Shown here piece after piece: positions 16,896 to 60,904 of a stretch of 64,000 nucleotides of DNA. The DNA is from Octopus sinensis. Lineage: Eukaryota. Location: NCBI RefSeq assembly GCF_006345805.1, contig NC_043006.1:13020001-13084000 (forward strand), in the 5' to 3' direction. The translations under genes and the position numbers were made by a program. Numbering within the stretch: position 1 is the stretch's first letter; each line of letters opens with the position of its first letter. The notes beneath the pieces were generated by a model. That model saw nothing but the letters and a program-made list of their open reading frames with translations, had not been told where the DNA came from and did no database searches.

Positions 16896-17161
16896 ATACC
16901 CTAGTATATTAACAATACCAGCGGGAATGTCATTGGCGGCTGAACTTTTTTCTGCAGATATCCACAACACTGCGATACCAGATTTTGTCGATTTTCAAGG
17001 TAACCCGCTACATTTGAAGTCTTCCTTGAACAGTCGGGAGTCAGTTTACCTGGAAAGAAACGTTGCAGTTATTAATACGGAAGTGAAATCAATGTAGGCA
17101 AGAATTCAAACTCTAGCATCATTGCTTCATAGTCATCCTATGAACTTGTCAGCCTCCCGTT

Positions 17162-17162
<1 letters not shown>

Positions 17163-17246
<84 letters not shown>

Positions 17247-17284
17247 TTATCTATCTATCTATCGATCTATCTATCTATTTATCT
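17163..17284. repeat. (CTAT)n microsatellite upstream of Tx1 insertion
   Basis: Direct; the same motif resumes at 18266. Confidence 0.95.
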
Positions 17285-18264
17285 GAGGAATACCTGACCC
17301 GCCTGTTCGCGACGACTTTCGGGCCAGGGCCCATGGACAACTTCCAGAGAACCCTGGCCTGGCAGTGCTACCGTGAAGCGCTACCCGTTCGGGATAAGCT
17401 CTACAGACACGGCTCAAGAAACACGGGGCCGACCTGTCCGAGATGCAGTCAGAGCGACGAAACCGTTCTGTACGCACTCGTGCAGTGTCCAACAATTTCC
17501 GACCTGTGGGCTTATGTCGAACAACTGCTGTCACGTGTGGGACGAGTCGGTTTATAAGCTGAGTCTATCGTCAATATTGTCACGCCTCATTCCTTCAAAC
17601 GGGAAGGAAGAGCTATTTTCATCATCCTTGTGGCTATGGCGAAAGAATGTATCTGGTGGACGCGTCTGAAAGGATTGGAAACAAACACTTTCCTCTCTGG
17701 TCAACCTCTCATCAACTTCTTCAAGTACCACTTGAAAAGGAAAGTGAGAGTAGAGAGGCAAGTTTTGTCTAGCGAATGTTTTATAAAAAGATGGGTGAAT
17801 GTAGCAAGGATGGCACGTATGAATGACGAAGCCACCTTGAGCATAATCCTATGAACCCAGAAATTGAAAACAGAGGGTTACCCTCTTGCAAACAAATGTG
17901 GTAACATATAACAATATTGACCGAGGTTGCCGTGGTCTTTTTCGTAGGCTTTTCTTCCCACGGATAAACCTTATCTGCTTCCCCCTTTACACCGTACATC
18001 ATGACACGATCCCTATTGATCGCTTTTTTCCCTCTTCCCCTTTTTCCTCTTTTTTCTTCTTTTTTCCTTTTTTCTCTTGTTTCTTTTCCTTTTCTTCCCT
18101 TTTTTTTCTTTTTTCCCTTTTACGATCCCTTTTGATCGAAAACCTATGCCACCTTTTTTTGTTTCTTTTGTTTTTGTTTTTTGTTTTTTTCATCCCCCAA
18201 AAGAAAAGCTCTACCTTGTAATTTGTCCCATCTGTGTGCAGCCCTGTGTGGCCAATAAAGAAAC
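17285..18264 (+). mobile_element. 5'-truncated Tx1/L1-clade LINE: ORF2 C-terminus plus 3' UTR
   Basis: LAWQCYREALPVRDKLYRHG..TCPRCSQSDETVLYALVQCP (zf-RVT type), one in-frame stop at 17555-17557, continues AKECIWWTRL to stop 17854; T-rich UTR and AATAAA at the end. Confidence 0.85.
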
Positions 18265-27179: not shown

Positions 27180-27279
27180 NNNNNNNNNNNNNNNNNNNNN
27201 NNNNNNNNNNNNNNNNNNNNNNNNNNNNNNNNNNNNNNNNNNNNNNNNNNNNNNNNNNNNNNNNNNNNNNNNNNNNNNN
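27180..27279. other. Assembly gap (100 N)
   Basis: Run of N. Confidence 1.
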
Positions 27280-59814: not shown

Positions 59815-60270
59815 GGTTTCAAATTTTGACACAGGGACAGCAGTTCTGGGGCAGGGGGCTAGTCGATTACTTCGATCCCAGTACTCAACTGGTACTTATC
59901 TTGAAATCCCAAAAGGATGAAAGGCAAAGTCGAACTCGGCGGAATTTGAACTCAGGACGTAAAGACGGACGAAATGCTGCTAAGCACTTGTCCGGCGCGG
60001 TAACGATTCTACCAGCTCACCACCCTCAGTACAATTAATATTGGCTTCAAAATTTTGGCATTAGGCCTGAAATTCTGTGTAGGGAGTGAAAGGATGAGGG
60101 TTGAGTCGACTACATAGACCCCCAGTACTCAACTGATGCTAATTTTATCGCCTCCGAGAGGATGAAAGGTTAAGTTAACATCGGCGGAAATGGACGTCAG
60201 AACGTAAAGACGGACGAAATGACGCTAAGCAATTTGTCCCGCTCGGTAACGATTCTGCCAGCTCGCCGCC
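59815..60270 (-). mobile_element. Two tandem diverged SINE-A copies
   Basis: Core and head motifs twice. Confidence 0.75.
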
Positions 60271-60351
60271 ATCGGTACGTTTAAATTTGACAAGTTCATT
60301 TCCTTTTACAAGTATCTTTGATACATGTAAATTAGAAAATAATAATATTAT

Positions 60352-60687
60352 AATAAAACTGAATCGGCTGGCTCTTCTTTATCTTATCACCTCAAAGATC
60401 CAAGTGCTTTCGCCGTTTAATTGGCAGTCTGTTTCCTATATTTGCATTCTGTACACTCCATTTGAAGGACAATTTTCTTGGTGGTTTTAGCATTTTTGTG
60501 AAAGATACGTTTGATCTGACCACCTCTTTATTTTCTATCGTAACGTTTCTTACCTTGGGCACAAAATGAGGCTGTACCAGCCTTGTACTGTGAGACCTTG
60601 TGAAAAGTATGTTTCCTGCAGTTTTTACCTTTGCAGCAAGTTCCCCGGGTTTTGGGGACGTTCACCATTTTCAACGCTAAGCAAAAG
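60352..60687 (-). pseudogene. RPL36A: Processed pseudogene of 60S ribosomal protein L36a/L44 (eL42), full CDS plus 5' TOP-like leader
   Basis: ATG at 60668: [98 protein letters not shown]; intronless; nonsense codons, 6-nt deletion, frameshift; leader CTTTTGCTTAGCGTTGAAA. Confidence 0.95.
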
Positions 60688-60904
60688 TAAAAAAATGCAG
60701 GAAACCTACTCTTCACAAGGTCTCACAGTACAAGACTGGTAAAGCCTCATTGTGTGCCCAAGATAAGAGACGTTACGATGGAAAACAGAGAGGTTATGGT
60801 GGTCAGCTCAAACCTATCTTTCACAAAATGGCTAAAACCACCATGAAAATTGTCCTTCGAATGGAGTGTACAGAATGCAAATAGAGGAAACAACTGCCAA
60901 TTAA
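60681..60904 (+). pseudogene. RPL36A: Inverted partial RPL36A copy (about codons 13-87)
   Basis: [69 protein letters not shown]. Confidence 0.95.

Follow-up and report, generated by a model that had tools for sequence, protein, structure and literature searches.

How can a single ribosomal-protein mRNA come to stand in an animal chromosome as two copies of itself, joined head to head at the mRNA 5′ end? The question is raised by a locus at positions 60352-60904 of a 64-kb stretch of the Octopus sinensis genome (C10:13020001-13084000 of a 2.72-Gb assembly; this whole stretch is hereafter the window, to which all coordinates without a contig name refer). A first-pass annotation of this DNA had proposed that a retrocopy of RPL36A (eL42) folded back at its 5′ end and primed its own second strand. 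The locus comprises the following features:

60274-60353, no strand: left flank, single-copy and AT-rich (GC 21%), between the retrocopy 3′ end and a SINE head
60354-60687, minus strand: intronless, disabled eL42/RPL36A retrocopy, delimited by aligning it with a parental mRNA assembled from the exons on C21
60417-60634, minus strand: arm 1, the segment of the retrocopy present a second time as an inverted copy, running from Cys12 (the TGC of TGCAAAGG) to about codon 84
60635-60680, no strand: loop or spacer of 46 nt with codons 1-11, the ATG and leader positions -1 to -12
60681-60687, no strand: turn heptamer GCAAAAG, readable as leader-antisense or as CDS-sense, from alignments and a by-hand crossover count
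60681-60904, plus strand: arm 2, an inverted, intronless partial eL42 copy that covers exon junctions 2/3 and 3/4 and ends within exon 4 at CCAATTAA
60905-61300, no strand: right flank, single-copy, abutting arm 2 at its distal end

Gapped alignment of the region with itself returned an imperfect inverted repeat, 60417-60634 against 60681-60904 around a 46-nt spacer, and these are exactly the arm coordinates that the first-pass annotation had given. A repeat search resolved two gap-free blocks, one of 111 nt (60522-60632/60684-60794, 88% identity) and one of 95 nt (60430-60524/60798-60892, 93% identity). The loop was also found as described, with the leader and the start codon (60668-60666, minus strand) lying inside 60635-60680. 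Folded as RNA, the region is predicted to form an imperfect stem of ~220 bp at −327 kcal/mol, against −123 ± 6 kcal/mol for shuffled sequences (z = −33), which rules out a chance origin of the inverted repeat. A window-wide self-BLAST for close inverted repeats was dominated by microsatellite palindromes, and the eL42 pair was not in its list, presumably owing to HSP culling.

The minus-strand copy contains a complete CDS. From the ATG, 82 residues can be read before a +1 shift and 23 more after it, giving a complete but disabled eL42 frame with four lesions (CAA>TAA, a 6-nt deletion, a +1 insertion and GGA>TGA). Its leader is secure to -14 (60682) and possibly extends to -19 (60687). It had been called full-length, which is correct for the CDS and incorrect for the mRNA, since homology to the parental transcript stops inside the stop codon at 60354 and the 3′UTR is absent. 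The plus arm encodes residues ~12-84 in a 74-residue reading and carries lesions of its own, TAT>TAG and an additional A (+1) besides the substitutions counted below. Both arms are recognized by the Pfam family PF00935, at 73 bits on the minus strand and 87 bits on the plus arm.

An assembly search for eL42 returned exon-sized matches on contig C21, and the locus read there proved to be a five-exon eL42/RPL36A gene, the parent of the copies described here. Its exon 1 reads CTCTTCCGCTAAGCATTGAGAATG and is followed by gtgagt; three internal exons come next, and the last exon (GGCCAGATGATTCAGTTTTAA) leads into a 3′UTR of 31 nt (AGTGTTTCTTAGGAATAAATGTGAAAGAGAA). The spliced product is 106 aa long, reaches 119.7 bits against Pfam Ribosomal_L44 and has its best named relatives among molluscan eL42 proteins (86-91% identity), with marine transcriptome entries reaching 96%. 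Four further intronless eL42 copies were recovered in the same search, two on C23 and one each on C16 and C11, so that at least five eL42 retrocopies are present in the assembly when the window locus is counted.

Two of these sister copies point to the probable 5′ end of the mRNA. The C16 retrocopy starts with CTCTTCCG, keeps the whole 3′UTR, ends in an A-run and is flanked by an 11-nt TSD (TTGACCGAAAA/TTGACGGAAAA), and the C11 retrocopy begins at the same C. Because the two share this start, C(-21), the first base of the CTCTTCC 5′TOP tract, was taken as the cap site, and the parental TSS would accordingly lie at -21, as judged from these two canonical retrocopies. The C16 copy, with its A-tail and TSD, further shows that in the same genome eL42 mRNA has served as a substrate for LINE machinery that depends on poly(A) and generates TSDs. 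A Penelope-like reverse transcriptase had been suggested for the window locus; we found no pointer to such an enzyme, and the C16 copy suggests an ordinary poly(A)-type LINE.

Several other features of the eL42 family were observed in this search. At five sites within the overlap the C21 parent differs from all retrocopies, both window arms included (for example GGTAAAAAA>GGTAGAAAA, Lys>Arg), which may mean either that the functional gene has changed since the youngest retrocopy or that the retrocopies derive from another allele. The retrocopy at C23:12957905-12958158 is 5′-truncated behind a T-run and loses homology inside exon 4; shortly after it stands GTTAGGGTTAGGGTTAGGGGG, a short interstitial telomere-like (TTAGGG)n tract (C23:12956901-12959200). 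Two more L44-family matches were found at C7512:39779-40031 (plus strand) and C12470:290202-290452 (minus strand), with open frames in very AT-rich surroundings and a single intron of ~25 nt (AAGgtgattg...acacAGGC), whereas introns in the C21 gene are kilobases long. Both contigs, unplaced and 300-370 kb in size, may come from another organism, e.g., a co-sequenced symbiont or parasite, and their eL42 genes were rejected as a source of the arms on account of the ~25-nt intron and a DNA identity to the C21 gene of only ~60%.

Both arms are retro-derived. All four parental exon junctions are contiguous in the minus copy, from which every intron is absent, and both of the junctions spanned by the plus arm are contiguous as well; the distal end of the plus arm lies within exon 4 and not at an exon border. 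The arms are 91.4% identical to each other, with differences at 18 of 209 aligned positions and 7 gap columns, close to the 20 or so substitutions plus indels that had been estimated by eye. Within the overlap, they are 92.3 and 92.1% identical to the present parent, 80-89% identical to the other retrocopies, and 5.3 and 5.6% different from a source reconstructed by majority rule. The arms are thus nearer to each other than to any other retrocopy, and are not drawn from two different paralogues, a pattern that the first-pass annotation had named as one that would speak against its proposal.

The distribution of substitutions allows the separation of the two arms to be placed in time. Private changes amount to 8 substitutions and 2 indels in the minus arm and ~11 substitutions in the plus arm. 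Both arms differ from the parent at seven sites, but five of these seven states are common to all other retrocopies and therefore represent changes on the parental lineage. This leaves at most two substitutions exclusive to both arms, compared with ~10 private to each. Such a small number of shared exclusive sites beside many private ones indicates that the arms split when the retrocopy arose or very shortly afterwards; the two have a single source and are of equal age. As a test of whether both arms arose in the same event, these counts are compatible with one event and would also leave room for a later duplication that came early. Transitions and transversions occur in similar proportions in the arms (6:5 and 7:5), disabling lesions have accumulated at neutral-looking rates, and both arms look to have decayed neutrally.

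The two exclusive sites differ in kind. The first is the third position of a Val codon, occupied by T in the older copies, by C in both arms and by G in the parent; this synonymous position evolves fast, and its state probably reflects the source allele. The second is a non-synonymous change, ACC>xTC, in both arms. With 5% divergence per arm over ~215 sites, we estimate that ~0.2 parallel identical changes are expected by chance, so that a single shared site of this sort is unremarkable. The two substitutions could also record a brief period in which the retrocopy was present as a single copy before it was duplicated.

Such a period is what would be expected if the inverted repeat had arisen after insertion, by a break or replication template switch beside the 5′ end from which fold-back synthesis copied ~220 nt of chromosomal DNA before resealing. 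We consider a DNA-level duplication of this type very unlikely. The shared substitutions would allow it to have occurred at up to ~20% of the lineage's age, and repair of breaks is known to produce short inverted duplications templated by a foldback (PMC11724301; bioRxiv 10.1101/2024.12.14.628481). However, the shared sites can be explained as the synonymous state of the source allele together with one parallel C>T, and the arms are equidistant from the reconstructed source.

The comparison of the arms also bears on less specific explanations, namely two independent eL42 insertions that happened to land head to head, a mobile foldback element or MITE with a captured eL42 segment, or an artefact of assembly. 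The genome does contain at least five eL42 retrocopies, and the window is rich in repeats. However, the plus arm has neither the 5′ nor the 3′ end of the mRNA and so lacks the 3′UTR and poly(A) that an independent insertion would retain, and among the retrocopies the arms are closest to each other and share their two exclusive states. A mobile foldback element is contradicted by the single-copy state of the structure and of both its flanks. The first-pass annotation had judged a read artefact improbable; a palindromic read or assembly artefact is excluded by the 8.6% divergence of the arms and the indels between them, and the only assembly gap in the window (27180-27279) is 33 kb from the locus. 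As a group these explanations are scarcely credible, and we regard them as effectively refuted by the arm ends, the single-copy state and the 8.6% divergence.

The position of the turn is the second line of evidence. On the minus strand the window leader reads CTTTTGCTTAGCGTTGAAA-ATG; the corresponding sequence of the parent and of every other full-length copy is CTCTTCCGCTAAGC... With the alignment anchored on the ATG and the heptamer at 60681-60687 included, the leader extends to -19 (60687), and the leader end at 60682-60687 runs straight into a sense copy that begins at codon 12. Measured from the cap site that the sister retrocopies suggest, the distance to the turn is 2-7 nt. The first-pass annotation had taken 60687 itself as the cap site and had regarded a parental TSS well upstream of it as fatal to its reading; the TSS is only 2 nt further upstream. 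A turn at the mRNA 5′ end favours formation during retrotransposition. For a DNA-level duplication, it would require that a breakpoint fell by coincidence within ~7 nt of the 5′ boundary, in a target made up of a 330-nt element plus its flanks, and that it did so very early in the life of the copy.

The pairing that the first-pass annotation had proposed at the turn fared less well. It held that the seven bases at the end of the first-strand cDNA paired exactly with a site in the same strand, but this exactness stems largely from counting the same seven bases twice. The heptamer GCAAAAG matches the CDS-sense sequence GCAAAGG at 6/7 positions and the ancestral leader-antisense sequence GCGGAAG at 5/7; the leader has CTTCCGC at this place in the parent and in all other copies, where the window reads CTTTTGC. 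We counted by hand, on the alignments, the changes needed for every possible crossover position. A crossover after the first two bases (GC) requires one later substitution, whereas the earlier reading requires two (CC>TT). The most parsimonious crossover therefore involves a 2-nt GC microhomology (60681-60682), with the leader stopping 7 nt short of the cap. Ancestrally, the cDNA end would have been complementary to the site used at 4/7 positions, and only GC is secure. What the alignments make secure is a leader present to -14 and a microhomology at the turn of at least 2 nt.

We also considered whether the turn took place at the best self-complementary site available to the cDNA end. This was rejected for every plausible cDNA terminus assumed; 19 other sites in the cDNA pair with its end as well or better.

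At the opposite end, the locus lacks the signatures of a canonical insertion. The 31-nt parental 3′UTR is absent from the 3′ end of the retrocopy, where a local alignment to the downstream sequence scored no better than shuffles, and the left flank contains no poly(A) or A-run (a T-run on the plus strand). Across the boundaries no exact direct match exceeds 7 nt, a length equalled in 71% of shuffles, and thus no TSD is evident. The first-pass annotation had already noted that poly(A) and TSD were missing; this is borne out, and strengthened by the loss of the whole 3′UTR. The 80 nt that follow the retrocopy are single-copy sequence of 21% GC, and a search of the 2.72-Gb assembly yielded no paralogous empty site, both immediate flanks being single-copy. 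The missing 3′ end would fit either a non-canonical insertion, 3′-truncated and made at a break, or a later deletion. Poly(A), 3′UTR and TSD would have been the hallmarks by which to prove a target-primed insertion, and their absence may mean that the locus underwent a later rearrangement. It is not a pristine insertion, and from this a DNA-level duplication gains some plausibility.

The surroundings of the locus are repetitive. Directly downstream of the retrocopy, and in its sense orientation, stand two tandem SINE-like copies of ~245 nt (59861-60273, minus strand) with a GGCGAGCTGGCAGAATCGTTA... head and 77-80% identity, and ~20 copies of the same family occur within the 64-kb window. No host gene or gene-like ORF was evident in the window, which consists of microsatellite-rich repeats and one LINE fragment; the latter is an ORF remnant at 17144-17557 (plus strand), embedded in microsatellite sequence, with a match to zf-RVT (PF13966, 30.4 bits), the C-terminal zinc-binding part of a non-LTR retrotransposon ORF2. 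An Rfam scan of 58-64 kb gave no matches. A second inverted repeat, much younger than the eL42 fold-back, was seen at 1979-2225/2605-2851 (247 nt, 98% identity, 379-nt spacer), with arms composed of a SINE head and ~148 nt of adjacent sequence. It may be a TE with terminal inverted repeats, the product of a recent inverted duplication, or an effect of the assembly.

On balance, we lean modestly toward the formation of the fold-back by snap-back, that is, by self-annealing of the cDNA in the course of insertion. The single origin and age of the arms, the turn at the mRNA 5′ end and the nesting of the inverted piece within the direct piece make this the simplest account. In the proposed sequence of events, reverse transcription of spliced eL42/RPL36A mRNA from the C21 gene would have ended just short of the capped 5′ end. 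While the cDNA was not yet joined to the upstream side of the target, its free 3′ end would have folded onto the same strand ~46 nt away, held by a very short microhomology of which GC is secure, and would have been extended for ~220 nt with the cDNA itself as template, either by the retroelement reverse transcriptase in a DNA-dependent mode or by a repair polymerase of the host. The extended end, which had reached mRNA position ~275 inside exon 4, would then have been joined to the target, and synthesis of the complementary strand through the unfolded molecule would have fixed a head-to-head inverted repeat whose arms thereafter decayed neutrally and independently. We infer both the order of these events and the polymerase from the finished structure.

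Parts of the evidence sit less easily with snap-back. The microhomology at the turn is weak (2 nt secure, 4/7 ancestrally) in a cDNA predicted to offer better self-pairing sites, and the two substitutions exclusive to both arms may point to a short interval between insertion and duplication. The origin proposed in the first-pass annotation is supported in part: the retrocopy and the turn near the TSS are retained, the one source and equal age of the arms speak for it, and the exact pairing is given up.

The same product could also come from twin priming with an exceptionally long overlap, in which two cDNAs are joined through their 3′ ends at a short microhomology. The first cDNA would have been primed near the mRNA 3′ end and would have run to the 5′ end; the second, primed by the other target strand in exon 4 (~275), would have stopped ~57 nt from the cap. 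The head-to-head geometry of the locus is exactly that of 5′-inverted L1 and processed-pseudogene insertions (strands traced as left flank, antisense b>a, sense c>3′), and the equal age and common source of the arms fit twin priming equally well. Since snap-back ends in the same geometry, sequence alone would not separate the two models. Among human polymorphic processed pseudogenes 13% carry a 5′ inversion, and the two cDNAs are known to overlap in some cases (PMC12016303). In 287 human L1 5′ inversions, however, the overlap has a median of 12 bp (quartiles 4-17 bp; PMC12016303), whereas here it is 218-224 nt and the inverted piece is nested in the direct piece. Twin priming would require the same stretch of RNA to be copied twice, or two RNA molecules to be used; it leaves unexplained why the second cDNA ended 57 nt from the cap; and its usual companions, poly(A) and TSD, are absent. 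For these reasons we think twin priming rather unlikely. The first-pass annotation had set classical twin priming aside because the arms overlap, and the long, nested overlap upholds that argument; with its identical final geometry, twin priming is disfavoured.

Further examples of a fold-back were sought. In a Pfam L44 search of the assembly, no head-to-head eL42 pair was found besides the one in the window. The L37ae and L34e families yielded one retrocopy each and no head-to-head pairs, and the ~20 SINE copies in the 64-kb window include no clear snap-back. This sample (eL42, L37ae, L34e and ~20 SINEs) is too small for a frequency.

The most fitting class for the locus is that of processed pseudogenes with a 5′ junction of the snap-back type. 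Whether it is a natural, germline-fixed fossil of the snap-back (self-primed second-strand synthesis) of a cellular mRNA cDNA in a cephalopod-type genome is a question on which we find ourselves evenly poised. If it is, a reaction documented to date only in engineered R2 insertions and in tumour or cell-line L1 events also shapes animal genomes, and the locus would be a clean natural specimen of a failed retrotransposition 5′ junction, in which the cDNA end primed on itself before it was captured by the chromosome. Snap-back would turn a single mRNA into a long inverted repeat, and could in this way give rise to hairpin-RNA loci as well as to fragile palindromic DNA. In practice, the locus is useful as a search image, i.e., nested head-to-head partial copies at the 5′ ends of retrocopies, SINEs and LINEs; a genome-wide scan with this image would give the frequency of snap-back by resident reverse transcriptases and reveal whether it differs between LINE clades. 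The locus itself is a single decayed specimen of modest significance, with no demonstrated function.

One consequence of such an event would be that a single step makes a hairpin homologous to a ribosomal-protein mRNA, which could have fed RNAi or ADAR pathways. Pseudogene hairpins yield endo-siRNAs in mouse oocytes. The human hairpin retropseudogene psiPPM1K does so as well (PMC3616710), and loci of this type resemble ours in being partial retrocopies with internal inverted repeats and the potential for a long dsRNA homologous to the parent mRNA. By comparison with them, the octopus arms are neutrally decayed and their stem identity is down to 91%; a dsRNA, endo-siRNA or ADAR role would be a legitimate possibility.

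Among retrotransposition products, L1 twin priming (Ostertag & Kazazian 2001, as cited in PMC12016303) shares with the octopus locus an inverted 5′ segment and a direct 3′ segment from one RNA, with short microhomology at their junction. L1 twin priming joins adjacent pieces of the RNA with a small gap or overlap, in contrast to the ~220 nt of overlap, the nested inverted piece and the absent poly(A) and TSD of the octopus locus. At L1-associated breaks, inverted duplications are formed by self-annealing of 3′ overhangs at 2-bp microhomologies, and 3′-truncated, non-polyadenylated insertions are also among the outcomes (bioRxiv 10.1101/2024.12.14.628481). The likeness lies in a small hairpin closed at ~2 bp of microhomology on a DNA end made by retrotransposition and then filled in. 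However, in those tumour and cell-line clones it is the genomic DNA beside the insertion that is duplicated, whereas in the octopus it is the cDNA itself.

Insertions made by R2 protein in human cells (PRINT) include snap-back 5′ junctions in which the cDNA 3′ end primes synthesis on the cDNA itself, often after full-length cDNA synthesis and for one enzyme especially, so that the upstream target is then joined to antisense sequence (PMC11371274; PMC11204384). Those events are engineered, site-specific and known from sequencing reads, whereas the octopus locus goes back to an old event, fixed in the germline, in which a cellular mRNA was involved and a non-canonical 3′ junction was left. The two are alike in the antisense segment joined to upstream target DNA and in its appearance after cDNA synthesis that, in R2, is often full-length. 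Snap-back is an outcome already known from these engineered retrotransposon experiments, and on this reading the octopus locus is a tidy natural member of the described class and not a new kind.
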